Shown piece by piece: positions 1 through 25,086 of a stretch of 64,000 nt of DNA. The DNA is from Bugula neritina. Lineage: Eukaryota; Animalia; Bryozoa. Below the pieces are notes generated by a model. That model worked only from the letters and a program-made list of their open reading frames with translations, had not been told where the DNA came from and did no database searches. Each line of letters opens with the position of its first letter. Position 1 is the stretch's first letter. The stretch is taken from assembly GCA_964035545.1 (NCBI GenBank), contig OZ037770.1, positions 5,404,729-5,468,728 of the forward strand, written 5' to 3'. The position numbers and the translations under genes were made by a program.

Positions 1-872
1 CTTTCCCAACTTCATAGATATCTTTGTTAGAAGATACTATTCCCATTGAGTCATTAAAATGTTTAATTTCTGCAAATTCACCGTCTAGGCCTTTCTCTTC
101 TTCAAGAATTTCTTTGCACAGCTGATCAGATACTTGGAAAAATTTCTTGTGAAGCTTCGAAAACTGTTCTTTCTGAAATTTATCTTTGTGCGTCAAGACA
201 AGCTTTGGTGGGCCAATATATGGATGGGCGAGATAGAGGTGAGACATGTAATCAAAAGCCAACTTCCTGACAGCCTCTCTGTCTGTAGACGATTTTGAAA
301 TCTGATCATACTGCTCCATGTTGACTACAATTACTGGTACACAATTCTGTCTCAGTGTCAAATGATAGGTGATATGGTAGACCTCCTGGCCTCCCATATC
401 TATGAGACGAAGAGTTGTACCATCCACCTTCACCTCTTCCACATTAAACACTTTTGTGGTTTCATCATGCTCTGCATTAGGACTTCTGTCAGTCAGAACT
501 CTCTTCTTGTCAGTGCTCTGTAATGTTCTGATCAGACTGGTTTTACCTGCCATGGTGTTCCCCAACACTGCTATTGTAGCAAATGGCAAGTTTCTACCAG
601 TGCCCTTAGCCAAATCTGTGTAGTATTGTCGCACAGCATTTAATCCTCTCCGACAAACTTCTAGTGGAGGAGATGTAAGAGCATCGCAATAATCTATATT
701 CAGTGTGTAAAGACGGGTTAGCTGTAGTATCTCAGGGTTCAAGGATGTCATGAATTTGTTGAAGAAAAGATTCAGTGTGTGCAGATTACTCAATATGCAC
801 ACTGACGATGGTAGACAGGTGAAGCAATTCATTGATAAGTTTAGTGTCTGTAGCTCCTGTAGATTCTGTATC
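1..872 (-). CDS. Roco exon: last LRRs, PPxE cap and Roc GTPase domain (runs off window)
   Basis: Open frame with P-loop GNTMAGKTS, G3-like DMGGQ and G4-like THKD; acceptor ttattag at 873-879. Confidence 0.92.
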
Positions 873-3800
873 CTAATAAAATAGTATATTTCTATTACCA
901 GCACACATATGTAGAAAAGAGAATAAAACATGATATCAGAAGAGTACCCAAGAGGACATTCGAAAGTAAGAGAAATCAAGGACACCCAAAGCATAGATGG
1001 CAGGAGACAATCAGAAATGATATCCAGTCACGTTGCATGAGAGTCACTATAATAAACTCATATAAAATTCTTTGAAGCCGTACAGTACATAGATATGTAT
1101 CCAAAAAATCACCTTAATAGTAACTACAAGTAGGTATAGGCTAAGCTACAATTATTATATTACATACTGTATGTAAAAAGGTGTTATATGGTGAGAGTAG
1201 ATACAACATAGAACGAAGATTGAAAAACTGGAAGAGAAAATTAGTGGATGTCCACCTAAAAGTCAGCGGGTCTAAAACTGAGTACCTATCACCACAGAAG
1301 GCAGCAATGACATCAGATTGAGATAATAAATTCTTTGGATGGCTTATCAATGGTCCAGCTTTCTAGTGCCAATGTCAATAACTGGACCTTCCTTTGGCCC
1401 AAAGAAACTTTCACTTTTTTATTCAACGAACATATTAAGATGATCAAATTTTTATGGTTATTAGGCTTTATACAGGCATTTGTTGTTTCTGGGTGGAGTT
1501 TCTCTCTCTCTATACTTGCAACTGTGGCAATCTTCTTAATATTGACCTCCTCCACCTGATTCTGATTTCTTTTCCCAAGTTCACTCTACTGGATGGGCTG
1601 ATTTTTGGGGCTCTCCTGGTATAATTTTACTCCTTTGAATTGTAAAAACTGAGAGAAACTTTAAAAAAGCTGAGCTCTCAGAATACTTTAAGGAAACTAA
1701 AAGTGATGGATTTCTTCAAGTTGAGAAGGAAGCACAGACAGTGAACAATGGAATAACAGGGTTGAGAGTTTTTCCCTTCATTTGAAAGCTGCAAAAATCA
1801 GCCCATCTGGTAAAGTGAACTATAGGAAAAAAACGGAAGAAAGTGGAGGAAGCCATTACTGAGAAGGTGGCCACAGTGTTGAGTTTAGATGAAAAGGAAC
1901 TCATCCCAGAAGCAACAACTGTCTGTATAAAGCCTAGTGATCATGAAGATTTGAACAAATTATTATTATTCCTCGAATAAGAACGTGAAAGTTTTCTTGC
2001 AACTAGAAAAAGTCCAGTTATTGACATTAGCACGGAAAGCTGGACCACCGATAGAACAGCCACAGAACTTGGAGCAAACAATTACCTGGCTCAGTAAGCA
2101 AGAAAACTGTAAAGAGAAACCTGTTTGAACCAGATGTTAAAGTTGGACGACCCCTCGTTGACTTAATTCGGCCTGTTGGGTTCAGGGCCATGGCACTATA
2201 TTTGAGCATGTTTCTTAGTTTTTTAAAGCCACCCTTGCTTCAGCTACTTAATGTACTTGATTCCAGCAAGATTCCAGCTGTTTCACACCATTCACTCACA
2301 TAAATAACAATTGCTACCTGAAACTTATTGGGAATATCATATAACGCCAATCGGCAGAACTTCTCTTACAATATTGCACACAAATCAGAATTCACTGTAA
2401 CTTTCAGTAGATTTGACAGATATAGGAATCATATATGTATCTACTTGATACTTCGACCAATATGAATAATAAAAATTGTATGATCCCAACATATTATAAT
2501 GAAAATTTGCATTTGTCAATGTTTGTACGCATACCATTTTGATGTGCGATTTATGTTAAGTTTAGGCAATATAAGGACGTTCAAACTTATGAATCTATAA
2601 AATACACTAAATGACCTTACAGAAAATGCTTGTTTGAAAAATTTTACTGTATTTAAACATCGGGTTACATCCTTGTGAAGTTGAGCAATTTTTCAGGTTT
2701 TCTTATGTTTGGGTATCTATATCTAGGTAAATATGATTTTCAAAATTACACAAACGAAGGAGTGTAAAGTCAATATAATCAACTATTTATGCTTGAAAAT
2801 TTATGGAAGTGAAATAAAAATTATCGATTTTTGTGATGTGGCTAATATTCGATAGTTTTCAAAATTTACAAAAATATGTCAATATTCAATGGCCTAGCAT
2901 ATATGCAGACAAAGAATTCTGTAGCATGTGTTACTACTGGTGCAAATTGACAGGTGCTATCAAATCACACAGCAAAATTTAAGGCTCAGTCTAAAAAAAT
3001 GATTGAGATATAAAGTTGATAAAATGGTCTAAAAGTAGATATCACCAATTTTCATCAACAATTTTCCAACCTTTGTTCAATTTTTTCTGTGTCAGGCCAG
3101 AAATATTCAAAAATAGTACTCAGGACATGTGTAAGTCCATTCGGTGTAAATATGAACAAAATCTGAGACGCAAAGGCGTGGGACTTTCTGAAATTTGGTT
3201 GATTTGACATGGAATGACCCTGTTACAATACACAGTCAAAGCAAACATACATCATGAATAGAAACTCAGTGAAAGTTTTGTAAACCACAAGAGGCTGTTC
3301 CATTATTAAATACAAAACATTTTACTACAGAATGATATATTATGGCATAGCTTACAACTGTGTTACTTTAAGGATATGACAAACTACTACATGGCTTTGA
3401 AAAGTTCACTTAACATTTTTAACCACAGCAATATATAATATAATATACTTTAATATTACTTGATAAGCATATAAGTATATGAATGTCTGAATTTTTGAAA
3501 ACATACCATAACACTAGTGCACTTACAAAACAACTAAAGAGAAAATACGAGAGTGCTATAGATAAACTCAACAAATGCAGTTTGTTAGCATGACAATATA
3601 CGATAGAATACATCAACACTGTAGTGTTGAGTTTACCCAGTGCCCCATGGTGTAATGATTAGTGTATCTGCTTAAGGTTTGGAGTTCAAAGCCCAGTTGG
3701 GGCAAAAGTTTGATAAACACCATTCAGTGAGCATATAAATATGTGAATTATTGAGTGCTTGAAACAATACAAAATCTATGAAACACAAACCTCTCAGGTA

Positions 3801-6800
3801 GAGTAGATAATTTACATCTCTGCATATCCAACTCTTTAAGTGATGTGAGTGATGACACAATTTCTGGTACTGTGTTGAGAGGATTCCATTTTATGTCTAG
3901 TTTCTCTAACTGAGTCAGTTGACACAGACTGTAATATATAGTGTGTGATATGTGTAGTCTACTGTATAAGGATAATATATATTATATACTGTATCATAAC
4001 AATATAGTTATAAAGTGTGTGATATAATGTGCAGTCTACTGCATCATAATAATATAGTTGTCACAAATTCTTCTTTATAAATTCTTATAGTATATATCAC
4101 TCTCTTTTGTTATTTAGCCTACACTTGTGATTAGTATGACACACAAGCCTATGCAAGTATTATTGAGCAATAATTGTTTACATTTTTAGTCACTTTCTAT
4201 TGGCTAATGAATATTGCCTATTCTGCCCTAGTCATGCACAGTGTGGAATGTGGTAGTATTTTCTAGAATTATCAATTTAGTATTAAAGCAGATGCTTTAC
4301 TTGTAAAAGTCAGTTCATTTTTATAAGTTGTTCTATGCATATCTTACGGGAGAATAAAATTCTACTTTTATTCACAACTCTTTTTACTCTCAACTGAATT
4401 AGCAAGCTGTATGCTACTTGTCTATACACTTTTGACTACATGACCTTTCGAACTAGTCACACTACAACCATAGTATTGTGACAACAATATACTGATACAC
4501 ATTGCTTGTGCATTCAACCAGGTGATATATAAAAACTAATTTGGTTGGGCAAAAGATAGTCAAAGCAATCAAATCACAAAGCTATGAAGCATACAATACC
4601 TAGTTTTACTAGTAAATGACTGTTTCAATAATTAGAAAACTTTTAAAGCATAATAATATTCTGTGGCATACTATCAAATTAAATCTTTTACAGAGTATAA
4701 CCAACTAATATAGATAACCTCAAAAATGCAGTTTTTTAGCATAACAATATATGTTAGGATATATCAACACTGTAGTGTTGAGTTTACCCAGTGTCCCCAT
4801 GATGTAATGATTAGTGTGCCTGCTTGCAAGCTGGAGGTCTTGGGTTCAAATCCCAGTTAGGGCGAAAGTTTGACAAACACCATTTGGTGAGCATATAAAT
4901 GTGTAAATTATGGAGTGTTTGAAACAATACAAAATCTGTGAAACACAAACCTCTCAGGTAGAGTAGATAATTCACAGCTCCCCATATCCAACTCTTTAAG
5001 TAATGTGAGTGATGACACAACTTCTGGTACTGTGTTGAGAGGATTCCCTCCTATCTTTAGTTTCTCTAACTGAGTCAGCTGGCATAGACTGTAATATAAA
5101 GTGTGTGATACATGTGGTCTACTGTATAAGGATAATTTATATACTGTATACATTTATTGTGCATTCAAACCAAGTAAAAATTTCAAGTAATGCACTTACT
5201 GTTATCAGACACTACAAGAGGCCGTTCCATTATTAAATACAAAACGTTTTACCACAGAATGATAGATAATGCCATAGCTTTCAACTGTATTACTTCAAGG
5301 ATATAACAAACTATTACATGCCTCTGAAAAGTCCACTTTGTATTTTTAACCACAGCAATATATAATATAATGTACTTTAGTATTACTTGATAGGCATATA
5401 AGTATATGAATGTCTGAATTTTTGAAACAAGGAAAGCATACCATGATACTAGTACACTAACAGAACTACTAAATAGAATTTAGAACTCCAATCATATTTC
5501 AATAGAGCATTAAATTTTCATATGCACTATAAAAGCCACCCAAAAAAAGTAACTGAATACAGAACAATCAGCCTAAAGAGTTTTGTTGTAACCAAGTTTT
5601 TTAGAAGATGTGAATTATTGAGTGCTAGAAACAATAGAAAATATGTGACACACAAACCTCTCAGGTAGAGTAGATAATTCACAGCTGCACATATACAACT
5701 CTTTAAGTGATGTGAGTGATGACACAACTTCTGGTACTGTGTTGAGAAGATTACTTTCTATGTTTAGTTTCTCTAACTGAGTCGGCTGACACATACTGTA
5801 ATATAAAGTGTGTGATATAATGTTTAGTCTACTGTATCACTATAATATAATATACTGTACACATTGCTTGTGTATTCAAACGAGGTAAAAAATTCAAGCA
5901 ATACACTTATTATTACAAGACACAGTCAAAGCAAACACACAAAGGGAATAGAAATTCAATGAAAATTTTGTAAACCATTAGAGGCTGTTTCATTATTAAA
6001 TACAAAACGTTTTACTGCAGAATGATATATAATGCCATAGCTTACAACTGTGTTACTTGAAGGATATAACAAACTATTACATGCCTTTGAAAAGTTCACT
6101 TTATATTTTTAACCACAGCAATATATAATATAATATACTTTAATAATACTTTATGAGCATATAAGTATATGAATGTCTGAGTTTCTGAAACAAGGAAAAC
6201 ATACCATGACACTAGTACACTAACAGAACTATGAAATAGAATATACGACATTACTACATATAACTTCGACAAATGCAGTTTGTTAGCATTTCAATATGGT
6301 TGGATACATTAACAGTGTAGTACTGAGTTTACCCAGTGTCCTTATGGTGTAATGATTACTGATTAGTGCTCTTGTTTGTAAGCTAGAGGTACTGGGTTCA
6401 AATCTCAGTTGGATCAAAGTTTGATAAACACCATTCAGTGAACATATAAATATGTAAATTATTGAATGCTTGAAACAATACAAAATCTGTGACATACAAA
6501 CCTCTCAGGTAGAGTAGATAATTCACAGTACCACATATCCAACTCTTTAAGTGATGTGAGTGATGACACAACTTCTGGTACTGTGTTGAGAGGATTCCCT
6601 ACTATGCTTAGTTTCTCTAACTGAGTCAGCTGACATAGACTGTAATATAAAGTGTGTGATATATCTAGTATACTGTATAAGGATAATATATATATACTGT
6701 ATACATTTCTTGTGCGTTCAAACCAAGTAAAAAGTTCAACAAATATACTTATTGTTTGTTAGCATTGCAATATGGTGGGATACATCAACACTGTAGTACT

Positions 6801-8616
6801 GAGTTTACCCAGTGTCTCATGGTGTAATGATTAGTGTATCTGCTTGCAAGCTACAGATCTTGGGTTCAAATCTTAGTTGGATCAAAGTTTGATAAACACC
6901 ATTCGGTGAGCATGTGAATTATTGAGTGTTTGAAACAATACTGAAACTGTGACACACAAACCTCTGAGGTAGAGTAGATAATTCACAGCTCCACATATCC
7001 AACTCTTTAAGTGATGTGAGTGATGACACAACTTCTGGTACTGTGTTGAGAGGATTCTCTTTTATGTATAGTTTCTCTAGCTGAGTCAGCTGACACAGAC
7101 TGTAATATAAAATGTGTGATACATGTAGTCTACTGTATAAGGATAATTTACACTGTATACATTGCTTGTGTATTCAAACCAGGTAAAACATGCAAGAAAC
7201 ACACTTATTGTTGCATAGAACAGCAAAGAGGCTTTGCTATATTATGTTGTAGGTGAGGAGAGGAAGCTTCATTATGCAAGGTCAGCTGTTAGCTTATAGT
7301 ACATGAGGCCTCATTCTACACGCTAAGTAAGTTAATCTGATGACTAAATTGTAATGTAATATATTTGTAGTTTATGACATAAAGTAGCCTTTTCTATACT
7401 ACTATAAACTGTGAATTACTTCAGTTTTCAGCTACATAAAACATGTTTTATTTAATGCTATCAACTAGCAGTACAGGCAGTTTTACACTTCCTAGTTTCT
7501 ACAACCAGCTTACTTGGTATAGGTACAATGTTGCACATAACACTATGTTAATGTATATGCATTTTATTATTTAATAAATAAGACAAATGAACTCATTTAA
7601 CATTTACACAGCTATTTTAATAGACACTCACTTGTCCAGACTTGCTCTGTCAGTCAGGTTATAAACACGTAGACACAGGGCTCTACCAGCAATCTCTCCG
7701 ATGTTACTTGGAATTGTTCCCTCCAGTTTGAGATCTATGATATCATAACTCCCAACTTCACGTTTCACCTCAGCAGTAGTATATGACTGGGTAGCAGCCC
7801 ACCATACATCTGACCAGCTCACAGGAGGCTGTCCAGAATGTCTGAACCAGATTCTCATACTCTCTGTAACATAATACAGTGATAGTGTGATTATTACACA
7901 GTGCTGACAGGTGATGTCTATCATTCTGACACCTGCCATCTACGGTTTGAATATATTTATTATATGGTGGATGTCAATATTCATATCTATAACTAAATTA
8001 CACATATTTTAATGAGTAGCTTTAGACTCTTCATAATCAGTCATTTTGTGCATAATTTCCAGAGCAGTGTTGATTACTTTGCGATAAGACAACTTTAACC
8101 AAGCTGCTTGCTTTATTTTACATATTATATAATTTTTCAAAGCATTAGGTTGATTGTTGACATAAACAAGTAGAGGATGTAGTGATAATATGTTAATCAG
8201 TATCCTTTAAATTGTAGTGGCTTAACATCTACATTCACTTATCTGTTACCTTTCATACGTCAAAGTTTACATACATGTACTAAAGAGTTGGACATACAAA
8301 CATTACATACAGATGAAGATAACAATGAATAGTGATGTATACAACCAAACATATGCATGTTCTTCACATTAGTATTTGATGGAGAAGCTATTATTCACAC
8401 AATAATAATCTGACATTACTTTTACATCTAAAACTAGAGCTTGATATATTACTCATATATGAATAATATAATGATGTAATATAACATAAATATAATATTC
8501 AACATTACACAAAATTTTATAATAATTTGCATGCTATTATCGGTGTTGAAGTGTTTTTATTGTCCAGAAAGAAATAAATAAAATAGTTGTTAAATTCACT
8601 CACCACCAGTAGCCAT
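1..8616 (-). CDS. Roco-family protein (N-terminal region + LRR array + Roc GTPase; MFHAS1/MASL1-like), spliced, 3' end outside window. Coding exons: 8604-8616, 7632-7863, 6962-7099, 6502-6639, 5658-5795, 4951-5088, 3791-3928, 1-872
   Basis: All exons have GT..AG flanks and compatible phases: accATG GCT ACT GGT G|gtgagt (phase 1), exon 2 ends GAC AA|gtgagt (phase 2), five 138-nt phase 2-2 LRR exons, then tag|G ATA CAG. The joined frame is open for about 602 codons: MATGESMRIWF...LDN-LRRs-...SPPLEVCRRGLNAVRQYY...VLGNTMAGKTSLIRTL...LIDMGGQEVY...LVLTHKD. Confidence 0.9.
900..1325 (+). mobile_element. Degenerate RTE-like LINE fragments in Roco intron
   Basis: Remnant translations SKRNQGHPKHRWQETIRNDI and LKNWKRKLVDVHLKVSGSKTEYL resemble the RTE-clade ORF2 C-terminal and post-RT motifs. 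Confidence 0.45.
1330..3220. mobile_element. Decayed DNA-transposon remnants (possibly Sola2-like): two opposite-orientation copies of one ORF fragment plus a terminal-repeat-like end
   Basis: Minus 1335-1555 (KKIATVASIEREKLHPETTNACIKP...KVQLLTLALESWTIDK) is homologous to plus about 1840-2110 (EKVATVLSLDEKELIPEATTVCIKP...VQLLTLA/ESWTTDR). TTTGACATGGAATGACCC ends at 3220, where cassette intron sequence resumes. Confidence 0.45.
3791..3928 (-). CDS. LRR cassette exon 5 (2 x 23-aa LRR)
   Basis: LCQLTQLEKLDIKWNPLNTVPEIVSSLTSLKELDMQRCKLSTLPE; ttacag| and |gtttgt flanks. Confidence 0.88.
4056..4486. mobile_element. Solo LTR in Roco intron
   Basis: Terminal inverted repeats (a)GTTGTCACAA...TTGTGACAACA, flanking ATAT 4-bp TSD (4052-4055, 4487-4490), internal AATAAA; absent from sister cassettes. 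Confidence 0.65.
4794..4864 (+). repeat. tRNA-derived SINE-head-like element; copies also at about 3642-3703, 6338-6415 and 6814-6883
   Basis: A-box-like TGGTGTAATGATTAG (consensus of copies) and B-box GGGTTCAAATCCC with an anticodon-arm-like CCTGCTTGCAAGCTGG; degenerate, duplicated with the LRR cassettes. Confidence 0.6.
4951..5088 (-). CDS. LRR cassette exon 4
   Basis: LCQLTQLEKLKIGGNPLNTVPEVVSSLTLLKELDMGSCELSTLPE (within ORF 4908..5153); canonical splice sites. Confidence 0.88.
5658..5795 (-). CDS. LRR cassette exon 3
   Basis: MCQPTQLEKLNIESNLLNTVPEVVSSLTSLKELYMCSCELSTLPE; canonical splice sites. Confidence 0.85.
6502..6639 (-). CDS. LRR cassette exon 2
   Basis: LCQLTQLEKLSIVGNPLNTVPEVVSSLTSLKELDMWYCELSTLPE; canonical splice sites. 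Confidence 0.88.
6962..7099 (-). CDS. LRR cassette exon 1
   Basis: LCQLTQLEKLYIKENPLNTVPEVVSSLTSLKELDMWSCELSTLPQ; canonical splice sites. Confidence 0.88.
7632..7863 (-). CDS. Roco exon 2, N-terminal region
   Basis: Part of ORF 7628..7939; acceptor gttacag (phase 1) and donor gtgagt (phase 2) match the neighbouring exons. Confidence 0.8.
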
Positions 8617-9459
8617 GGTTACCAACTAGTAGATAGTCTTTCTTGGTAATAAGTTTTAGCTAAAATCTAGCAGTTCCACCTAAAACAGATATTAAATATA
8701 AAGTAAAATAATATGATTACTCATCATCTTTATTATATTCTTATAGTATATTAATATTTCTAAATATAATGAATATCTGGCTAAACAATACACCAGATCA
8801 TCAAATGTTTCACAACTTCCTGAAATAAATGTGGGCAGCTATTAAATATAAAGTAGTAGAATATAATTACTTGCTATTTTCACCCTTTGTAAAGTACACG
8901 GATATTCCCAAACAAGAGTCCAGATCTGACTGAGCAATACACCAGGTGAACAGATTTGAATCAGAACATTTGACAACTCTCTCAAATACTTATACATTTA
9001 AAACATATATATATACGTACATATAATCATTACTAAAAATAGTATTCCTTTGCTTCAAATGCTTGAAAGTTGAATAAGTTGTGACTTAAGCAGACTAAGG
9101 ACTTTAATTTTTTATTTGACTTGACACAGTTTGGAGTATGAGTAGAACTTATCTCAAAAAACTTTTTGAAATATTTATTTTCACACAGGCCCGATAGTTA
9201 TAATAGTGTAACAGCAAAATCCAAAACTGCATTCAGCAATTCCTCAGAGGGGGAAATGTTACAAAATATTCTACTCCTGGACAAAGCTGTATCAAATAAT
9301 CATCACCCAGCAATTTACATACTCTTATATAAATAAACCAAGTACTATAACATGACTATAAACACAGGGTTATGTTTTCTGAAGAGATGTAGGAAATTAG
9401 TAAAACATGGAAATCGCATGACTAACTCTACAAGCTGACTGACCTCTACTAGCTGCAGT

Positions 9460-10045
9460 GTAGAATATTAGTGCAAGGTAGAATATTAGTGTAAGGTAGA
9501 ATATTAGTGTAAGGTAGAATATTGATGTAAAGTAGAATATTAGTGTAAGGTAGACTATTAGTGTAAGGTAGAACATTAGTGTAAGGTAGAATATTAGTGC
9601 AAGGTAGAATATTAGTGTAAAGTAGAGTATTAGTGTAAGGTAAAATATTAGTGTAAGGTAGAATATTAGTGCAAGGTAGAATATTAGTGTAAGGTAGAAT
9701 ATTAGTGTAAGGTAGAATATTGATGTAAAGTAAAATATTAGTGTAAGGTAGACTATTAGTGTAAGGTAGAACATTAGTGTAAGGTAGAATATTAGTGCAA
9801 GGTAGAATATTAGTGTAAAGTAGAGTATTAGTGTAAGGTAAAATATTAGTGTAAGGTAGAATATTAGTGCAAGGTAGAATATTAGTGTAAGGTAGAATAT
9901 TAGTGTAAGGTAGAATATTGATGTAAAGTAGAATATTAGTGTAAGGTAGACTATTAGTGTAAGGTAGAACATTAGTGTAAGGTAGAATATTAGTGTAAGG
10001 TAGAATATTAGTGTAAGGTAGAATATTAGTGTAAGGTAGAATATT
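9460..10045. repeat. 18-bp minisatellite (GTAAGGTAGAATATTAGT)n, about 32 units, with a 198-bp higher-order period
   Basis: Read directly; variant units recur every 11 units (66-aa period in spurious ORF 9397..9972). Confidence 0.95.
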
Positions 10046-12444
10046 CACAGTGATAATCAGTCGAGTCAGGAGTTGAATAAATAGTTTAAATACACATACC
10101 CAGAGATCTACCAGTTGGAGGCTAAAGCAGCAGATTTGACATCTTATTTCACATCCAAACACATACAGTTATCTATAAAAACAACAGGATTATTTCTGAA
10201 AAAAGCAAAACATGAACACAAAAACAGTCCAAGTATGTAATGGGTGAGCCTAGCAAATATAGCTGACTAGTAATTGATTTATGCAAATAAAACATCTTTA
10301 AATCAAATGTTTTCTGTGACAGATACATACGGATTAATGAAGCAAGTGGATTGAGCATTCCATTCAGTATATTAAATATAAAAAAAGACAATATTTTACG
10401 TATTAGCTATTGATGAAGTAATATTCTCCACATTAGAAGTAAACAAAGTAATATTGTAAACACTGTTTAAAAACCAAAAAGTTTACTTTCAGCAGCATTA
10501 CATCATGCTAGAAAATTATCAGATTATTTATAATTTGCTATTTCTGTAATGAAGGGATTTGTAGTATTTCATAGGCTAGCGACTAGTTAACCAGATGTGG
10601 TTTGCTGACTGCCCTAAAAACATTCAATTACTTGTTAGGCTTGACTACTAGGAGGAATGTAAAAAGAATGCAATAGAGGACTTAAATCCAAACTTTCAAG
10701 TTAGCCAAAAGTCTATTTAACAATAATATCAAATTAATTTTTAATGCCATGGTGTAACTTAGTTACAACTATTAATCGTATTCGCTAATGGCTGTCACTG
10801 TTATTACTGTAGTTGCGCAGATCAACTATAAAGTAATTAGCATAGTGATTATATATAAAATATATAAATAGTGAAGCTAATCATTAGCAGAGCAATAGTC
10901 ATTAATTATTATCAGCATCAGAAAATACTATTGCGATGCATACTACTACAAACATCACATGAATATATCACAAAATATCATATTCATACTGATTTTGACA
11001 ATTCACAATTATATTTAAATTGTGTATTACATTATAATTACAATCATGGATTTATGATAAGGATTAAGATTAACATAAAATTACTGTACACCCATATTCG
11101 TATTGACATTTACATTAAATTATCATTAGATTTACTATCAGTACTACTAATTTATAGTTTTAGCAGCACTAATTATTAAACGGATAAATACTTTAATGGA
11201 AATCATTAATGGTTCTGCTATTGACACATTATGATGAAAAAAAACATATTACCACTATCATTTGATAGATATCACTATAACTATAGGTAATCACCCTTAA
11301 CTTGAAGTTAATGGTTATCATTACATTTAAAATTATATGCATCTCAATGGTAATGCCATATTACCATTGAGATGCATATATATTAAATTTAATATTCATA
11401 TATATATTTACAAAGTCAAAGTGATTATCCTTATGATTATCATTACGACAATGGTTATTATCATGATGGCAATCTAAACCATAGTGATAATTATAATCAT
11501 ATTGATACACTTATAGTTGCAGTCAGAACCCATAATGGATAATAAGAATGATAAACTCATAGTCAGTCATAAAATTTGAAGTTGAATTTTAACGTAAAGA
11601 AAACATTGACTGACAATAAAAACCAGTACGTGGCGCTAGATATCATCACAATTTACTACTATGTAGCCTAATTGTTTTACTACATGTTATTATGGCTAGT
11701 AACTTAGCAAAACGTTAATAAAACTACGATAATGAGAAATGGTGGCTGTAATTAGGTAGCAATTTGGTAACGATCTGCTCAAACTAGGAAGTGAGTCGGA
11801 AACGGAAAAGAAAAGCAAATACTCGCGTTGGCAAAAAGTCATGCGATGTCTATTGCTTGCGCTGTAGAGTTTTCTTCTCACGGCTAAAATTAGTTTTTGT
11901 TGCTTTCATTTTTGTGTCAATTATAGATATTAACAATGATAATATATTCATATTGTAATATTCACTGAGTTGTATATCTCGTTCCAAATTTTGAGTGTGA
12001 GTGTGCGTGCGTGCGTGCGTGTGTGTAGTATGTTTATCACAAATAATATGAATTGAAAAGGTATACAATTTATGAAAATTAGTTGATATTTATACATATT
12101 GTAATGGGATTATGTAGCATAATAATGGGGTCGTCCCCTCCTGCGTGGAATAATTATAACCATGTTCTACTATCCAATCAAAAGGACCGGAAGGCAAGGT
12201 TCCGGTCAAGTGACTGTTCGCGGGTTAGCTAGCAGAAACCATGTGTTGTTGAGAGCAGGGGCTCGTAGTAGTAACATGTGTTTATAATTGATTGATGTAT
12301 TGTGGTTTTGATGTGATGTTATAATTATGTTTATCGAGTTAAATAAAGGTTATCGTACGCAAGCTCTGCTAGTAATTGCTAGTTAAATTGAAACTAAATA
12401 CGCAGGCAATCCACGCTTAATAATTGCACTAAAACTCACAACAG

Positions 12445-12462
12445 TGGTGGCAGCAGTGGGAT
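12445..12462 (+). promoter_or_regulatory. Primer-binding site, tRNA-Leu type
   Basis: TGGTGGCAGCAGTGGGAT just after the LTR; near-complement of the tRNA-Leu 3' end (..ATCCCACCGCTGCCACCA). A similar PBS starts at 46979. Confidence 0.75.
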
Positions 12463-15400
12463 TTCGCGTATATCAAGATGACAGAAAGAGACACAGAGCT
12501 ACCCATTCGGAGGAATGAAGGTGAGGAAGATAACGTTGCTATACCTATAGAACCAGAGGGGAGAGTGCATAGGGAATGTTATGAGGAGAAGTACCACTGA
12601 GGGTGCCCACCTTCTCAGGTGAGGAGCCGGTGGAGCAATTCGTCTAAGAATTCCAAGATGTAATGGAGGTTGCACAGTGGCCACCCAGAATAGCATTGCT
12701 CAAGCTCAGGATGGCACTGTCAGACACGGCCTAGCCATACGGAGTAGGACCAGACATTGACGGAATCTTTGTTTCCCTGCGGGCCCGTTTTGGCATCTCC
12801 GCCGTAGACGCGCGGGCCCGTCTCCAGATATTACGGCGTGATCCTCACACGCCGCTACAAGAGCACGCTACCACGGCAATGATGCTGGCACAGATCGCGT
12901 TCTGCAACCTGCCGCAAGTAAACCGTGAGAGGTACACCTATGATGCCTTCGTGCAGTCCATCAACGACTTGGGACTCCATCACCAACTCCTGGCGAGGGG
13001 AGTCACCACGGTCGAAGGTGCGTTTGCAGAAGGGGAAGCTTACCTTCTGGCCAGTCAGCTGCACCGGAGTCGTGTGACTTTTCGTCAGGTGGACATGGAG
13101 CCCTCCGCTGCTCCTACCGCTTCTAACGCGGAAACCATAGCGGTGGCCAAGGTGACGCAGATGACGGTGGCATCGAAGGTCGCACAAATGACCGACATGC
13201 TAGTCGAACTGGTCTCTGCCTTTGCTCCTCTCAGCCAGCTAGACGCTACTCATGAGCTTGACGGGCCACTGGTCCAGTCACCTGGTAGAGGACACCCTTT
13301 CTTGCTGGGAGTGCAGAAGACCAGGACACTTCCAGAAACACTGTCCACGACTTAAACCAGGGTTAAACTACGACGGCCCGCGGATGCTCCCACATCCGGC
13401 GGGCTGCCGATAAATTCCCAAGAGAGGACACAGTGGCGTCCGCCACGCCGGACACCCGTCCGGAACCTCGCGGAACGGCCACCAGGATGGCAAGCAGGCT
13501 GTACAAGCCGCTCGCCGCCGCTGTTCTCAATGCCACCCGCAACAGGTTCGACAAATGACGGACTGCAGAGTCTGCGAAAGGAAAAGCCCAAGCGCTGCAA
13601 GGCGTGGCGCCATCCCCTCAGCAGCTGGTCCCCAGTCGTCGTCAGAAGCCTAACTCCTTCCCCATGGCGAGGGAAATGAGGTCACACAAGATACCACTAC
13701 ACCCCCACGAGAGCAGCCTGTTTCTACCAGGACGGATAGCCGGCAAGCCTGCCAAATTCCTGCTAGACACGGGCTGCACCACCAACCTTCTGGGTCGTCG
13801 ATTCTTTGACACACTCAGCGCTCAGATCCGAAGCAGGTTGAGGCCGTACGAAGGCGATCATGGCACCCTGGCAGACCGGTCGTCCATCTCCTTCTACGGT
13901 GTCATTGAACTCCCTAGGAGCGTCTGTGACCAGACCATCCAGGAGACGTTTATTGTTGGACAACTCTAGGAGGACGCCATCTTTGGGATGCCATTCTTAC
14001 AACGACACGGATGCCGCATCAATTTTGGTAAATCTGCGATGATTATGGGCGGCCGAGAGCTCGCCTGTGTCGATAAGTTTGGCCATCCCCTAACGGGAGA
14101 AGAGCCGGTAGTACGTACTTGTGCTATGCCCGGCCACTCCCGGGACACCGTCCACCGCCAGGTAGACGGTGGCCGTACCTCCAGGCCTGGAGCTGTAGAG
14201 AGCGCGCACCCGAACATCCCACCTATCTGCAGCTCTAACCAGCTGACACGGAGAAGAAAGACCTCGGTGCCATGCCTCCACTCCCCCTCGGAGACGGTGA
14301 ATCTACCACCCACCTCTCCACAAAGCTGTACTTCTTCTGTTCAAGAAGATAACAGCAGACCATCGCGGGAAACCACGATGGGAAGTCCTCTAGAGAACCT
14401 GCTCCAGGGCGAAAGACTTCCTCACCCCACACCCCACACAGCCTGGGGACTCGTGGGGGAGAACTAGACGATTGCGTAGATAACGAGAAGCGCCAAGAGA
14501 CGGCCACGTTACTACATAAAACCGAGGCAACACCTCACCTTGGGGACCGTGACATGCCCCCAGAGGTGGCACAGGACCCCCACGCCGAACCCATCTCAAC
14601 CGATGGCGTCAAGGAGCTAGGACACCTCCAGGAACATATTCCGGGGGTGGTAGCCGACGTCTATCGAATGAAAAGGAAAGGGCGACGACCCAGTGACAAA
14701 CAACGGAAGCAGGGCTGCGCCGAGTGGCAGCTGTACTGCCGACGTTGGAACGCACTGCGGATCGGGCCGGATGGTCTATTGACCATATCTTTGGCCGCTA
14801 ACCACAACCAGCCAGACCCGGAGAGGACCCTCTGTCCTGCAGCCATTCGCCGGGAGTTGATAGAAGAGGGACACCAGCAGGCTCTTGGGGGAGCCCAACA
14901 GGTGCTCACCGAACTACAACTCTGGTGGCATTGGCCTAAAATGGAGCGTGAAGTATGACGCAGAGTTAGGCAGTGCGGAGTCTGCCGGGCCAGTAAGCAC
15001 GGCCGCCCTCCTGGCAGAGTGGGGCGGCAGAGGCAAAGTGCAAAAGAGCCCGGGCAGACGGAGACTGCTGACCTGGTCGACAAAACGCCCAGGATGCAAC
15101 CCAAAGCTGTGGTGAGGCAGGAAAAGCCACACCCGTTCAGGGAAGTGCGCTCACCGCGTTCAGCGTGCAAGCTGCCACCGCCACTTCCTAGGTCAGAAAC
15201 CGACCTAGAAGTGCAAAACCCCCCCACTGGAGGGGGTTCGTGCGGAGATGTTAGGAAAGCTCCATTTGTCACAAACTGGCTGAAAGCACCACCCATGAGA
15301 CGTGACTATCCACGGGTGCGTAAACCGCCCTGGTTGGTGACAACACCTCGGAAACGGTGTTCTAGACCAATCCCCGCGTATTGCAAGGACTTACCACGTG

Positions 15401-15641
15401 CCGTTCAGGGCGCGGTCAAACGTCCTACGAGGCGCCGTACGGGGAAGAGAGCAAGGCGTGGGAGTTGTGAACACCACGAGAATATCAACTTTTGCTTCGG
15501 CGGAATCTCAAACAAGATTCATACGCCGGAAGTAATAAGTCTTAGCCACGTTTCACAACCACGCTGCTCGCTATTTCATCACATTAATACAGCTTTGAGT
15601 AGACGTACGTAGAAATCATAAACATACCACTCTCATTCACA

Positions 15642-16670
15642 ATGGCTTGCCAAGAATCGAGAGGTGAGTTAGTTATGTTTTTGGTACGAGGGCTAAACTG
15701 TATTAATCAGCTTAACTGTAACAGAATAAGCTGGAGACTCGGTAAGGATTTTTAGTGGTGGGAACTCACATTGACTCTAAGACTGAACAGTCCGTTACAG
15801 CAGTGTGTGTTTTCGATCAACTATTCATTAGCTGAGTCTGATGAGTGTCTAATTGAGTTAAGTACCCGCCAGGCTATATACACCGGTTGTACTCAGTGTA
15901 CCCTCTTACACTGTTATACTCTTGCAGATCACACTCGATTGACCAACTCCGGGTCACAAGATCTACACTCTCTCTCCTCCTTGGATAACGGACCGGAAAT
16001 GGACAACGGACTGCCCGCGGTGCTGCGTCGAAGACACAGATGGGTGTCGCGACGGACGGAGCGACAAATTGAAGAAGCCTGGGGACCGAGTAGGTCACAA
16101 CACACCTGCCATGTGTGTTACGAAGAGCTTCCTTCCCACCAAGGACTACGGCTGCATGTAAATGCACACTTCCTGCTACGTTTCTGTCCGTGTGGATTTC
16201 ACGACGTATACCCATACCCCGTCGTGGCTCATATGATGGACTGTTTCGCGGGCGAGGGCTATGTAGTGGACGCGGACAACTATGACCAATATCTAGAAGC
16301 TGTCAGACTAGTGGTTAAGAAGGCTTTGACCTGGGCCGCATTATCCTCCGGATTTTAAACACTACTAACAGCCACCCGTCAGAAATCCCCCATGGTAAAA
16401 ACGGTCGCTGCAATAATACTTCGGCCGGACAACACCCCCATGGAAGCATCAGACTCTCCAGAAGAAGCGACGCCAACTCTAACCAGGCCTAACAGACTAG
16501 CCACGGTTGAGGAAAGACTCCTACGACTGCAGGATGAATTCACCCAGTTGGCCCCCAACTTACTCAGCACTTCAATGAGCCTTAGTGAACTAAAGGGCTC
16601 AGTGGGACGCCTTAAGCGTAGATTACGTGCACGGCAAGCACGACACCGAATCCAGTCCCTGAAAAACTAG
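15642..16670 (+). pseudogene. Retrotransposon ORF3, spliced (15642-15663 + 15928-16670): C2H2-type zinc finger, CPCG Cys/His motif, coiled coil; one in-frame stop
   Basis: ATG GCT TGC CAA GAA TCG AGA G|gtgagt ... ttgcag|AT CAC ACT is in frame with ORFs 15771..16358 and 16392..16670. TAA at 16356-16358 aligns with CAA in the sister element. Confidence 0.8.
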
Positions 16671-18281
16671 GAGCTAGAAGTTGACAGTTCCACCCCACAT
16701 GTCCTCGGGGTACTACATTGTGATCATGTAAATGCTTGATCTGCTAACGACCTACGATCCAGGTCTCTCTCTCTGTGGCTGACCAGCTGTGTGTTGGCCG
16801 TCTGTTATCTTACTTATATGTCTATATATGTTGTACATTTGATATTTTTCTTCTTTCTCTTTGTGGATTTTCTTTACTTATGTTATTTTTGCATTATTAT
16901 ACTATTTTTGTTTTATCAGAAAGTGGGGCTTTCTGCTGGTGGGGGCGGTGTAATGGGATTAAGTAGCATAATAATGGGGTCGTCCCTTCCTGCGTGGAAT
17001 ACTTATAACTATGTTCTACTATCCAATCAGAAGGACCGGAAGGCAAGGTTCCGGTCAAGTGACTGTTCGCGGGTTAGCTAGCAGAAACCATGTGTTGTTG
17101 AGAGCAGGGGCTCGTAGTAGTAACATGTGTTTATAATTGATTGATGTATTGTGGTTTTGATGTGATGTTATAATTATGTTTATCGAGTTAAATAAAGGTT
17201 ATCGTACGCAAGCTCTGTTAGTAATTGCTAGTTAAAGTGAAACTAAATACGCAGGCACTCCACGCTTAATAATTGTGCTAAAACTCACAACAATATGTAG
17301 GCTATTGCTAACAACCTCTTAGACTAAAGTAATCTGCTAACAGGATAGTAGGGTTTTATAGCAATCTTTAAATCAAGTACAGTGTTCACCTTCATACAGA
17401 ATGGCAATAAATTGCATACGCATGAACTAGAATGTTGATAAAATGGTGTAGTGAATTTCCTAATTCACAATATTATGTGGGTCAACTTAAACAAAGCTAC
17501 TACACCAGACTATTTACGTTAAAACAAGTTTATTATTGTAGTGAGTCATGCAATGTACTAATATGAGAATCGTCCTCTCTCCGTTCTAGGAATACTAAGG
17601 CCCCTATGTAGTAACCAATCAGCAGCACCGGAAGATATGCTTCCGACTAATGTGACAGTTCCCGGGCAATTGACATTGATCACGTTGTTGTAAGCGAGGG
17701 CTTGAAGTAGAAACATGTGTTAGTAGAGGACTGATGTTATAGCGTAATTTGATGTAATGTTTGCTTTGTATTGTATTGTGGATAATAAACGTAAGTACTC
17801 GACAGCTACCTTAGTAATTGCTAGAAACTATCTCGCAGACCACCAGAAAACCAGACCATCCGGTCCGAATAGCTGCCGCTACCGCTAGCCCTTCTTTGGA
17901 AACCGAGGTCGACTGCTTGATGACTAAGCTGAGACAATTGGTAGCGACCATAACATACAGGAACCCCAGGGAGTACAAGAGACCAACCATAAAAACTCCC
18001 AGACCAGCTATACGTTGCTAGGGATGTGGCACCCGGGGACACCGCCGCTCGAGCTGCCCATGACCTAGAAAGCAGCAAAAACCCCATGATCCCCGGGAGC
18101 CCCCAAAGCTCCGCGGGCCAAAGCAGAAAAAAAAACGGGGTGGATATCGCCAGCAGTCCGTACGGACCCAGCGGTATGCCCCCCCCACCAGTGGCAAACA
18201 CCTCGGCAAACCAGCCAACCAGGACGACCACAAGAACCTTTCTCTCTGCCTCTCACTAACCACTTCGGTCCGCTACCAGAA

Positions 18282-21200
18282 ATGGAGCCGACCAGCGAGG
18301 CCCCTACAGGCATCGGAGGGGATCAATACACTCCTCTGCAAGGAAAATCTCACCGGCCCCGCAAACCGCGGAACAAACGGGCACAGCCCCAGTCAGCCGA
18401 GACCGAGCACGCTGGGGGAGTACGGGTACAGCCTCACGGAGGTAGCTACTTTTTGCCAGGGAAGGTGGCTGGCAAAGCTGTCACCTTTCTGTTAGACTCC
18501 GGGTGTACCACTAATCTCCTCAGCCGTCGGGTCTTCGACACCCTCCCCTCTAGGGAGAGGGGAGCCTTAGGTCCCTATACCGGGAAACCAGGCACCCTAG
18601 CTGACGGGTCACGGATTCCATCCTACAGTATTATAGAGCTGACTGGGCGCGTCCGCGACCAGGCCATCCAGGAAACCTTCGTCATCAGCCAACTCGAAGA
18701 GGATGCTATACTGGGAATGCTGTTCTTGAAGAGACACGGTTGCCGCATTGACTTTAGCAAGTCAGCCATGCTGATGGCCGGCAAGGAACTCGCCTGTGTC
18801 GACAAGTTTGGTCGTCCCCTAGTGGGAGGCGTGCAGGTAGTACGGAACTGTACAATACCCAGCCGCTCCCGGGCTGCCGTTCACTGTAGAGTGAACAATA
18901 GCCAACTCTCGGGGTTGGGAGTTGTCGAAGGTGCGCACACGAGAATCCAACTCGCCAGCAGGCTTAACCGGCTGACTGACCGAGGAGAGAACTTGGTGCA
19001 GTGTGTCAACCCTTTCTCCGAAGCGGTACAATTACCGTCAGGATCCATGCTGGGCCGCTTCCACTCCATCCAGGAGGAGGATATAAGGCCGTTGCTGGGA
19101 GCTGCGACGGAAGGGCCTCAACAGAGCCGGTCAGTTAGGCGAGGGACCGTCCCACCACACGTTCAAGAGCTATACCAGGCAGCGTGTGACGGCTGGACGG
19201 GCAACGGAGAGCGCCAGGCCATGGCTCAGTTGCTACGTGACTATAGTGAAGTGTTCAGCAGCGGGGACCATGACGTCAGCCTGACCACGGCCGTCCGTCA
19301 TGAGATCACGCTGGCTGCAGGGACTGCCCCTATCCGACAGCCCACTCAGAGACTGGGACCCAAGAAAGAAAAGGAGGCCAGCCAACAAGTCTGGGATTTT
19401 TTGGACCGCGGTCTCATAGAGCCAGCACACAGTGCGTGGAGCTCGCCGGTCGTCCTGGTCCAAAAGAAAGACGGCAGTTGGTGGTTCTGTGTGGATTATC
19501 GCAAACTAAATAACGTGACCATACAGGACGCCTACCCCTTATCCAGGATCGAGGAATCTCTGGTCGCCTTAACCGGCAGCAAGTACTTCAGTTCGCTAAA
19601 CTTGTTGAGCAGCTACTGGCAGGTCCCCCTCAGTCCCGACGCCCAGGAGAAAGAGGCGTTCATCACGCGGGACGGCTTATGGGAGTGGAAAGTCCTACCC
19701 TTTTGCCCGCCTTCCGCTCCCGCCATCTTCCAGAGACTCATAGAACAGGTCCTCAGTGGACTCCACTGGAAGACACTGCTGGTATACCTTGATGTTGTCA
19801 TCATGATCTCCCCAGACTTTCAGACACACATCAGTCGTCTGCGGGAGGTCTTCAAACGACTCAGAGGTGCCAATCTGAAGCTCAAACTTTCCAAGTGCGC
19901 TCTCTTGCAGCCAGAGGTGAAGTACCTGGGGCACATCGTCGGCCATCACGATGTGGCGACGGATCCTGAAAAGGTACGAGCTATAGAGGATTGGGTCACC
20001 CCCCAGGATTTGACCGGGCTACGGGCTTTCCTGCGGCTGGTAGGGTATTACCGGCAATACATACCAGACTTTGCGGGGGTAGCGCAGCCGTTAAATCGGC
20101 TTACCGCAAAGGGGGTGACCTGGCAGTGGACTTCTGTCGAACAGAGAGTGTTCGACTGCCTCAAAGGCCGCCTACTAGAGGCCCCCATCCTAGTCTACCC
20201 AGACCCTGCCCTGGAGTATTTCCTAGATACTGACGTCAGTGACCAAAACGTCGGCGCTGTGCTGTCCCAGTTGCAGGAGGGCCGCGAAGTAGTCGTGGCC
20301 TACTACAGCAAGTCTCTCTCACCCACCGAACGAAATTACTGCACTACCCGAAAGGAACTGCTGGTAGTAATCAAGTCGGTGAAGCACTTTAGACCTTATC
20401 TATACGGCAGGGAGTTCCGCTTGCGGACCGACCGCGCTTCCTTGATTTAGTTGTGCAAGAGAGCAGAACCGTCCAGCCAAGTCGCCAGGTGGCTCGAGGT
20501 CCAGGCCAAATTCTCTTACCGGATCGAACATCGGCCAGGTAAGAAACACGGCAATGCTGACGAACTGAGCCGGCGGCCGGACGAGGGGTGTACAGAGGAT
20601 AGTTAAGAGCATCCTCACTAAGAACATCATAAATTTCTCTCAAAATGTAGTTTGGGTTCTTGAATAATATTGCTCTGCGGATGGCATGCATGTTGCCTAC
20701 TTGCAATTGTTTAGCCTAAGATCAAACTACAACCAATAAGCAGCAACCTTCATTAGGGCTGTGTTATCTATCAACATTTTATTATGGATGCTACATAAAC
20801 AAAGTACAAAGCAAGCTATTCATTATAGCCTGCCAGCTAACAAGCCTGTAATTAGCATGTACGCGCCAATATCTTCTCATCCATACGTGCTCATTGAAGC
20901 GTGAAGTACTGCGTGCTGCTAGTTTCTTATGAAAAAATATGGCATTTTTAGTGTATAAATCACCAATTTGTGGGCAATCTAGAAGATTTATTGGAAAAAG
21001 AAAAAAAATTACCCTGGAAAAATATCTCAGGATTCCAGCAGTGCAATTTTTATTCAGATATCATGCTTTGCTGCTGAGATATTTTACTGGTACTGAAAAG
21101 TCAGCTTTTCAGGAAAAATTGGCCAAAATTGGGGAGTTTTTTGTCTATAACTTTGCAAAAAAAATGAAAATTGAAATTTCCAAAAAAGTTACCCTGGAGA

Positions 21201-23428: not shown

Positions 23429-23437
23429 ACGCTGCGT

Positions 23438-24169
23438 ATGATTACAAATACCGGGTTCCCAGGTAAGCTTGCTTTGACCCAACATTCTCACTAATGGAAT
23501 CAGGTCTAACATCCGTTAGTTCTGATTTAATCGCTCTGATTGAATCAGAACTACTGGGGACCAAGTGGAACCCACCGAACCTGCCAGGTCTGTTTCGAGG
23601 AGTGCCCGTCACACCGCTCCCTGCGTCTGCATGTAGATGCACACTTCCTACTACATTTCTGCCCATGCGGGTTCCACGATGTATACCCGTACACTGTGAT
23701 TGTCCATAAATTGAGCTGCTTTGCCGGAGAGGGCCACATCGTAGATGAGGACAGCTTCTCCCAGTACCTAAACACCATCAAGCCGGTCATCAAGAAGGTT
23801 ATAACCCTGGCCGCACTAGCGTCAGGGTTCCAAGTACTGCTGTTATCCGCCCGCCATAAGTCTCCTATGGTTCAGGGCCCATCCACTACCCTCGTCAACC
23901 CTAGCAACACCCCTGAATCAGAAAGAACAACGATACCCCCAATATCAGAGACTGCTACAACCCCACCAAGGCCTGGCCGATTGGCTAGTGTAGAAGAGCG
24001 GCTTGTAAGACTACAAGCCAAGTTTACGCAACTTGCCCCTGACCTGCTGGATACGACGACAGGCCTATACCAGCTGAAGGACTCAGTGGGGCAACTGAAG
24101 AGGCGGCTACGTGCCCGACAGGCTCGACACAGATCACGCTCGCTACAAGAGTCAGAGTCCACCCAATGA
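23438..24169 (+). pseudogene. Retrotransposon ORF3 (zinc finger/coiled coil); exon 1 at 23438-23462, acceptor and start of exon 2 apparently deleted
   Basis: ATG ATT ACA AAT ACC GGG TTC CCA G|gtaagc; ORF 23540..24169 CQVCFEECPSHRSLRLHVDAHFLLHFCPCGFHD...RLASVEERLVRLQ...LKRRLRARQARHR is homologous to 15928-16670. Confidence 0.78.
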
Positions 24170-25086
24170 GTATGCCTGGGGTAGGCACCTTTCGGTGAAC
24201 TGTATCCTCGTCTGGAAAGTGACGAGTGCACCGACATTGGCCCGCGTGCTGGTAAGCACCCTCTCTCTTTATAGCTGACTAGATGTGTGTGTTCGATCAC
24301 CCTGTTTACTTCTGTATATAAATGTTTGTGTACTCAACTATTTCTCATCTTCCTTTTTGTGGGTTTACTTATGCATTCTTTTTTCTTGGATTATTGTATT
24401 GTTTTTCTTTATATGTGTTTTTTTTCGTATTGTGTTATCAGAAATTAGGGCTTTCTGCTGGGGGGGGGGGGGCGGTGTAGTGAGTCATGCAATGTATTAA
24501 TACGAGAATCGTCTGCTCTCCGTTCTGGGAATACGAAGGCCCCTATGAAGTAACCAATCAGCAGCACCGGAAGATATGCTTCCGACTCATGTGACAATTC
24601 CCGGGCAATTAGCATTGATCACGTTGTTGTAAGCGAGGGTTTGAAGTAGGAACATGTGTTAGTAGTTGACTTATGTATAGGAAAATTTGATGTAATGTTT
24701 GCTTTGTATTATATTGTGGATAATAAACATAATTACTCGACAGCTACCCTAGTAATTGCGAGTAGAATAGCCAACTAAATACGCAAGTAGAAACTCACGC
24801 ACAGTAATTGCATGAATTACTACAATCTTTAATGATACACAATACAGAAATTTATTTTGAAATCAAGCAAAGAGCATCCAACTCAGTCTTTTTTTAACTT
24901 TGCTAGTTCAAACAAAGAGTTGTTTGGCAAGGTAATATATGCAAATATATGGGTATTTGAGCAAATTATGACATAACGAACTATTGAACTAACTAAAAAA
25001 TGCTGCTATAATTCATTCGTGAAGCCTAAATTGATTGTATGTGAATGTGTGTGTGTGTGTGTGTGACTGAGTGGGTATATATATAT

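Follow-up and report, generated by a model that had tools for sequence, protein, structure and literature searches.

Hypervariable leucine-rich repeat cassettes in a putative LRR-Roc-COR-caspase receptor family of the bryozoan Bugula neritina

Introduction

The closest known system to the gene described here is the LRR-ROCO family of brown algae, in which each leucine-rich repeat (LRR) is encoded by one 72-nt exon of symmetric phase and the exons are shuffled (Teng, 2024, PMC11378527; see also PMC4104024). Four concave positions of these repeats are under positive selection, and the number of genes ranges from 9 to 47 per species (PMC11378527); in Ectocarpus and Saccharina the genes are clustered and have been proposed to be immune receptors (Zambounis, 2012, cited in PMC11378527). 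A comparable arrangement is found in a 64-kb stretch of chromosome 6 of the bryozoan Bugula neritina (C6 in the following; the whole stretch that was analysed is referred to as the window). Here, five LRR cassette exons spanning positions 3791-7099 belong to a candidate receptor gene, which has in common with the algal genes the apparent LRR-Roc-COR order, the duplication and shuffling of short LRR exons of symmetric phase, signs of selection on the concave face, and clustering in the genome.

We consider it probable (at about 0.72) that this interval forms the sensor arm of a gene belonging to a very large germline family of the LRR-Roc-COR-caspase type, diversified through duplication of its cassettes, exchange between them and selection on a small set of codons. 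A handful of Roco genes are expected in animals, with four in humans, and to our knowledge it is the brown algae that are called the richest in ROCOs. Bugula neritina is colonial, shows biology of the allorecognition type and relies on a bacterial symbiont that is passed on vertically; given these traits of the host, sensing of self/non-self or of the symbiont would be an obvious role to propose for the family. The assembly used, tzBugNeri2.1, was built from PacBio HiFi data and comprises nine chromosomes at a quality value (QV) of 53.7 (PMC11480708). The corresponding genome note (PMC11480708) is without a gene-family analysis, and no paper linking bryozoans with Roco proteins was found in full-text literature searches.

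Results

All positions are given in window numbering, the gene lies on the minus strand, and searches were run exon by exon, without a spliced full-length protein. The five cassette exons, each of 138 nt and all on the minus strand, are located at 6962-7099 (cassette 1), 6502-6639 (cassette 2), 5658-5795 (cassette 3), 4951-5088 (cassette 4) and 3791-3928 (cassette 5, the last, followed by a 2.9-kb intron). Each is preceded by ..ttacag and followed by gtttgt; the first base completes a split codon and the last two bases are AG, giving phase 2-2, and the 45 codons in between are free of stops and encode two 23-residue LRRs. Cassette 3 is likewise intact, with unusual framework residues (M1, P4, L16), and its position was fixed by the reading frame and the ag/gt borders, the BLAST placement being two bases off. 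Among the five, variation is concentrated in seven hypervariable codons (11, 13, 14, 34, 36, 37 and 39), whose 21 bases hold 16 of the 26 variable nucleotide columns, as against 10 in the other 117 bases (Fisher p = 2e-10); identity between cassettes amounts to 62.9% in these codons and to 96.4% in the framework. The variable residues read Y/S/N/K/D, KE/VG/ES/GG/KW, D/D/Y/D/D and WS/WY/CS/GS/QR in the five cassettes, and codon 39 (E/E/E/E/K) becomes apparent as the seventh variable position on a family-wide view.

The introns carry the marks of the same duplications. Cassette-associated repeat families (D2-D8) were detected, repeats of 300, 278 and 81 nt recur together with the exons, and the flanks of the cassette units are 70-95% identical to each other. 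A tRNA-like segment belonging to the repeat families D5, D6 and D8 (3582-3700, with copies at 4733-4860, 6278-6410 and 6754-6880; strand not assigned) lies at the same offset in four of the five cassette units, and as this segment is shared within the duplicated intron unit, exon and intron must have been copied jointly. Its labelling as similar to a short interspersed nuclear element (SINE) was made by eye only, and neither ARAGORN nor Rfam detected tRNAs or any further RNA family anywhere in the window.

By the gene model drawn from the sequence, the five cassettes are part of one intact gene composed of a start exon, the cassettes, an LRR-Roc-COR exon of ~670 codons, and caspase exons. The start exon (7632-7863, minus strand) has its acceptor ag at 7865-7864 and its ATG at 7858-7856, followed by 75 codons; it ends in two bases (AA, before gt) and so joins any cassette in frame. 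It encodes an N-terminal cap and a first LRR-like stretch, without a Pfam match and with no evident signal peptide or membrane span, and we infer a cytosolic location of the receptor. The ATG, acceptor and donor of this exon are conserved in an alignment with six paralogs. A 75%-conserved block at 7416-7546 was considered as an exon and rejected as not coding. At the other end of the array, the first 872 bases of the large exon (1-872, minus strand, acceptor ag at 874-873) open with the G that completes the split codon, and the exon encodes about three LRRs, Roc and a COR-like region. Its open frame of 747 codons runs past the window start to C6:5403515; alignments of paralogs stop near residue 670, diverging just after a conserved ..ALIHPC motif, and it is for this reason that the donor to the caspase exons is placed near residue 670. 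Comparison of the 2.9-kb intron (873-3790) with other family loci revealed no further conserved exon in it, only cassette-intron repeats and an inverted repeat (1345-1607 and 1792-2053; ~260 nt, arms 77% identical). The inverted repeat (1345-2053) is probably a foldback insertion or one resembling a miniature inverted-repeat transposable element (MITE), and its insertion makes the intron longer than in the paralogs.

The Roc domain was recognised by PF08477 at residues 112-204 of the large exon (30.1 bits, Pfam cut-off 27), and the translation contains the P-loop GxxxxGKT, the switch-II motif DxxG and a THKD resembling the G4 motif of LRRK2. The same region matches the solved Roc domains of Roco proteins (3dpu, 6hlu, 8r4b and 4wnr; E 1.5e-8 to 3.5e-8), namely those of the Chlorobium and Methanosarcina Roco proteins and of LRRK1. 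In the Pfam search neither NACHT nor NB-ARC was found, the signals being those of Roc, MMR_HSR1 and Arf-type GTPases only, and by protein-language-model features the nearest named clusters are LRR-Roc-COR proteins of the MFHAS1/MASL1 type (0.95-0.98) and bacterial Roco proteins. The LRR region, comprising the five cassettes and the approximately three LRRs that open the Roc exon, is N-terminal to Roc, which corresponds to the group-1 Roco architecture. Downstream on the same strand follow the caspase exons (Peptidase_C14 at 37.7, 27.8 and 17.8 bits). The caspase located ~2.8 kb before the window start (L054:6925-7155, minus strand) keeps the His (THGG), and its Cys motif reads EASSG rather than QACRG, with Ser in the place of the catalytic Cys, so that the His-Cys dyad of active caspases (SHG ... 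QACxG) is not present in the window gene. One paralog on chromosome 6 (L052, near 9437, C6:4.74 Mb) has QACSG and a metagenome-derived one (L058, near 5627) has HACSG; taken together with the EASSG found here, this indicates that the family mixes potentially active and dead caspase copies.

An earlier note on this DNA had described five 138-nt exons of phase 2-2 with two 23-aa LRRs each, and coordinates, ag/gt borders and open translation agree with that description. Its list of variable residues at the x positions of the repeats matches the translation exactly, and its statement that every cassette was duplicated with its intron is borne out by the repeat families D2-D8, the flank identity and the SINE-like segment in four of five units. 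It had noticed a symmetric phase as well, and phase 2 is indeed shared by the start exon, each of the five cassettes and the Roc exon. It had further placed a Roco GTPase at 3791-7099; the Roco identity stands, given the Roc domain and the matches to solved structures, but not the position of Roc, as the interval consists of LRR exons only and Roc is encoded by the next exon, from 872 past the window start.

The gene is one of many. Sixty-four Roc-COR exons were scored out of 271 candidates in the genome, and every one of them (64/64) aligns over its full length at 60-84% identity, most with open frames; likewise, all 150 cassettes scored out of 812 profile candidates are full-length and stop-free, with nearly all of them situated on C6 between 2.5 and 6.3 Mb. 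Judged by these sequences, the family appears to be a very large germline LRR-Roc-COR-caspase set of at least 64 and perhaps several hundred genes. Cassette number, as counted from match coordinates, varies between 3 and ~13 per gene, with 5 both in the window gene and in its neighbour at 5.54 Mb, no fewer than 9 at 4.09 Mb, and ~13 between a start exon at 4.794 Mb and a Roc exon at 4.809 Mb; a block of four cassettes was recently duplicated at C6:4.092-4.097 Mb. A second subfamily is found on independent metagenome contigs, where five cassettes of another sequence type, with the same variable positions, are followed by Roc and caspase exons. On contigs L056-L058 these cassettes were missed by BLASTN with the window cassette and found by a protein profile, and one contig of this subfamily is collinear with C1:22.72 Mb at 91% identity.

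Across 86 intact cassettes the same seven codons stand out, with an amino-acid entropy of 2.0-3.1 bits as compared to at most 1.1 at every other codon. In pooled Nei-Gojobori counts the proportion of nonsynonymous differences (pN) reaches 0.43 at the seven codons, while the framework has a proportion of synonymous differences (pS) of 0.096 and a pN of 0.054. Parsimony on a tree assigns 31-58 nonsynonymous changes to each hypervariable codon and 0-15 to those elsewhere, giving a framework omega of 0.58 and a hypervariable nonsynonymous rate (dN) of 3-6 times the global synonymous rate (dS). Because the framework synonymous sites are far less diverse than the introns (pi 0.077 vs ~0.40), the introns were taken as a second neutral proxy. 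The median pairwise distance is ~0.29 in introns, 0.06 in the framework and 0.38 in the seven codons. Three recent duplicate tracts (97.6-98.8% identical) contain 48 mismatches in 4519 intron positions, 23 in 1170 framework positions and 27 in the 210 positions of the seven codons, that is, 12.9% mismatch in the latter vs 1.1% in the introns (odds ratio 13.7, p = 2e-18). In one pair of cassettes whose introns agree completely for 300 nt in both directions, five of the six exon differences fall into hypervariable codons, four of the changes lying within six bases.

The cassette profile is in register with solved proteins built of 23-residue LRRs, among them a Leptospira LRR protein, SHOC2, LRRD1, variable lymphocyte receptors (VLRs) and repebodies. 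An AlphaFold model of one 45-residue cassette, of moderate confidence (predicted local distance difference test, pLDDT, of 73), contains strands at residues 9-13 and 32-36. Codons 11, 13, 34 and 36 fall within these predicted strands, alternating with the core residues L10, I12, L33 and M35, and codons 14, 37 and 39 come directly after them; by established LRR geometry, the seven codons are thus predicted to form the concave face of the repeats and its rim.

A further pattern concerns the relation between exons and introns. Intron distance and exon-framework distance are uncorrelated (Spearman rho 0.000, 1911 pairs), framework pS remains near 0.09 at any intron distance, and no stretch other than the cassette exons retains >90% identity throughout the family. 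In the recent tracts the framework has about twice the mismatches of the introns (p = 0.018), and some cassette pairs have introns that are 100% identical for 300 nt on both sides of an exon differing at 6-14 positions. From the 3' end of the cassette C6:4802494-4802631 onward, identity between the copies at 4.80 and 5.10 Mb is ~100%, and upstream of it only 60-70%; the two segments (C6:4801552-4804689 and C6:5101593-5104730) are ~100% identical over 2 kb and lie almost exactly 300,041 bp apart. The uncorrelated distances, the flat pS, the excess of framework mismatches and the breakpoint at an exon together point to recombination or short gene conversion using the exons as homology. A search of the 86 sampled cassettes for identical donors of the converted exons found none, and gene conversion is therefore deduced from mosaic patterns. 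If the framework is homogenised by such exchange, the diversity retained by the seven codons interleaved with it argues for selection on them.

Evidence from RNA comes from two RNA-seq runs of a symbiont metagenome, in the form of short assembled contigs. These cover cassette exons and few intron bases, and include exact in-frame joins from cassette to cassette, in which ..GAGAG is followed directly by CTTGTGCCAG.. or by TTTGTGTCAG..; cassette-to-cassette joints were absent from the DNA run. The first letters of the joined exons differ from those of the window gene, and hence the junctions stem from paralogs. Splicing at the predicted sites holds for the family, not for the window copy. The intronic stretch 4230-4459 has a very high summed contig depth in the DNA run as it does in the two sets of RNA-seq contigs (6,089 and 16,699 in the latter); it is not an exon of the cassette gene and is probably an abundant expressed repeat.

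The ideas of the earlier note on how the array diversifies can be set against these data. It had proposed to collect the paralogous 138-nt exons genome-wide, and the gene is indeed not single-copy, at least 150 intact cassettes and at least 64 Roc-COR exons being present; the turnover of cassettes that it proposed is visible in the 3 to ~13 cassettes per paralog, the duplicated block of four and the near-identity tract that ends at a cassette exon. Exchange restricted to exons agrees with the uncorrelated exon and intron distances and with the differing exons inside identical introns. Variation is not evenly spread over the codons, being concentrated in seven by the entropy in 86 cassettes as well as by the 16 of 26 columns in five, and the placement of the x positions on the concave face is supported by the one-cassette model and by the register with solved LRRs, which locate the variable codons in or after the strands. 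By pairwise proportions, parsimony counts and mismatch tallies among paralogs that recombine, change at these positions is faster than neutral in that it exceeds both the interleaved synonymous sites and the flanking introns. Transcripts that splice the cassettes, whose absence the note would have taken as refuting it, exist as in-frame junctions in the RNA contigs, from paralogs and not from the window gene. These data contradict none of the proposals of the note.

The surroundings of the gene are rich in repeats. Upstream of the start exon lies an 18-nt minisatellite (9334-10143) with >30 copies and a higher-order period of ~198 nt. Copies of a Gypsy-type long terminal repeat (LTR) retrotransposon, GC-rich (52-57%) beside the AT-rich receptor gene, occupy 12000-24300 and 62000-64000 and are also seen at L054:296-3155; they encode protease, reverse transcriptase, integrase and a further conserved Cys/His-rich open reading frame (ORF), and some are broken by stops. 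Two plus-strand ORFs ~10 kb apart (28424-28930 and 38065-38424) encode closely similar peptides and represent copies of one repeat or gene fragment. Elsewhere in the assembly, the best Roc/Rab-like GTPase matches are on small contigs (C66, C101, C110, C230, C160, C42, C204 and C307; L041-L050) with several in-frame TAA/TAG and no TGA, which suggests a cobiont or contaminant with a ciliate-type code left in the assembly.

Discussion

The cassettes of the family multiply by tandem duplication of exon-plus-intron units. On the reading of the interval as a sensor arm, ectopic recombination together with short gene conversion between cassette exons would uncouple the histories of exons and introns. 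Through this exchange the framework would be kept uniform and variant codons would pass from gene to gene, and selection for new binding surfaces would maintain the diversity of the seven codons. The order of the domains suggests that a ligand bound to the concave LRR face could alter the state of the Roc-COR GTPase and thereby lead to a signal via the C-terminal caspase; going by architecture, the members of the family could be intracellular immune, cell-death or allorecognition receptors. The window copy, with Ser for Cys, might in this case act as a non-cutting partner, a regulator or a decoy.

A number of observations weigh against this interpretation and temper the probability that we give it. 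No RNA contig matches the Roc exon of the window gene at >=97%, and its caspase is, as far as the motif tells, catalytically dead. The match to COR-A is weak (PF16095, 20.3 bits vs a cut-off of 35.3; residues 328-394, after Roc, profile positions 1-68); more distant loci in the genome, on chromosomes 1 and 7, score above the PF16095 cut-off, and homologs have precomputed matches to PF16095 or PF25497. The copies at 4.80 and 5.10 Mb could stem from a segmental duplication of very recent date; if they are instead a retained haplotype, the differences between them are allelic. As to the tests of selection, the 86 cassettes come from one chromosome region and are biased towards similarity to the query, the seventh codon and the exact set of sites were defined on the same data on which they were then tested, and the sequences are recombining paralogs with a tree drawn from the same 138 nt, which makes the tree-based counts approximate. 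Values of dN/dS against framework synonymous sites are moreover inflated, since these sites are ~4 times less diverse than introns; the intron comparison alone is unaffected.

Other explanations start from the same observations. That the window copy is a decaying or non-functional member, whose cassettes reflect the past of the family, would fit the Ser at the catalytic Cys (EASSG for QACRG, where a paralog keeps QACSG), the Roc exon without an RNA contig, the three odd framework residues of cassette 3, and the inverted-repeat insertion in the 2.9-kb last intron. We nevertheless regard such decay as unlikely, seeing that all exons checked are open, that the splice sites are intact in every cassette, and that the Roc-COR exon has an open frame of 747 codons with intact P-loop and DxxG; catalytically dead caspase paralogs, furthermore, often act as regulators. 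A different objection is that the seven codons are unconstrained surface positions drifting neutrally, with the rest of the exon held by purifying selection and concerted evolution. Their mismatch in recent duplicate tracts, 12 times that of the surrounding introns, makes this quite unlikely in our view, as does their location among the homogenised synonymous sites of the same 138 nt, where neutral sites should become homogenised too, and the non-random use of residues, with G, D, N, K, W, E, R and S accounting for 84% of those at the seven codons and A retained as the second base of codons 11 and 34. Drift gains some ground from the deep pairs, in which the hypervariable p-distance (0.38-0.44) is only ~1.5 times that of introns (0.29-0.30), both being partly saturated, and from the constrained or homogenised synonymous sites of the framework (pi 0.077 vs ~0.40 in introns), through which classical dN/dS is inflated.

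The remaining alternatives shift the source of diversity away from the germline genes. Symmetric cassettes might be skipped or alternatively chosen, so that diversity would arise mainly at the level of RNA and one gene would provide many LRR arms: start exon, cassettes and Roc exon are all of phase 2, leaving any subset in frame, and alternative splicing of LRR exons has been reported in Ectocarpus (PMC11378527). The junction contigs, however, are short and stem from paralogs, and adjacent joins and skipping look alike in them; as the germline already contains hundreds of distinct cassettes, enough to explain the diversity, we consider a predominantly RNA-level origin unlikely. Somatic rearrangement or conversion of the cassettes, resulting in cell-specific receptors similar to the VLRs of lampreys, would find an ideal substrate for templated copying in a near-invariant framework around hypervariable codons, and a single 3.7-Mb cluster could supply hundreds of donor cassettes. 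Yet the gene is already complete in the germline, where it has canonical splice sites and an open frame, in contrast to the VLRs with their incomplete germline gene; rearranged cassette joints are absent from the DNA run, and nothing in the data points to somatic change, for which reasons we hold this to be extremely improbable. A broader speculation, to which we would give a slim chance, is that the cassette framework, synonymous sites included, is kept near-invariant as a homology substrate that lets hundreds of cassettes continually exchange binding-face codons by templated copying; exchange or combinatorial splicing might then also run within the colony, in somatic or germline stem-cell lineages of this clonal animal, and give rise to colony-specific repertoires for allorecognition or symbiont control.

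Comparison with Known Systems

The kinase-free animal Roco proteins of the MFHAS1/MASL1 type (LRR-Roc-COR) have the same core as the germline family proposed here; MFHAS1 is single-copy and has no cassette-exon arm, hypervariable face or caspase, and its likeness to the bryozoan protein is one of language-model features, the matches to solved structures reaching only prokaryotic Roco proteins and LRRK1. The innate immune receptors of the NLR/STAND type, known from animals and plants, likewise consist of three parts, with LRRs at the C- or N-terminus as sensor, an NTPase as the central switch and a death fold or a protease as effector, and are similarly found in large, clustered and fast-evolving families with hypervariable LRR faces. 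They differ from the bryozoan proteins in the nature of the switch, which is NACHT or NB-ARC in the former and a Roc small GTPase with COR in the latter, and in the arrangement of the parts, as the bryozoan LRRs are N-terminal and the caspase is fused and not recruited. With the VLRs of lampreys and hagfish the family shares LRR modules of invariant framework and hypervariable concave face, and the cassette profile matches VLR and repebody structures; VLRs, however, are assembled somatically by insertion of flanking cassettes into an incomplete germline gene and are secreted or membrane-anchored, whereas the bryozoan gene is already complete in the germline, its introns having canonical ag/gt borders and its exons being open.

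As compared to the LRR-ROCO genes of brown algae, the bryozoan genes belong to an animal host, are encoded with two LRRs per exon of 138 nt and not with one per exon of 72 nt, number at least 64 to ~270 as opposed to 9-47, and carry an appended caspase; the two expansions are presumably independent. Should the bryozoan proteins be receptors, they would represent a new intracellular class in animals, uniting sensor, switch and executioner in one chain, and would offer a natural system in which to ask what a Roc-COR switch senses, a question that bears on the biology of LRRK2. Such a class would be convergent with the brown-algal ROCOs and analogous to the NLRs.

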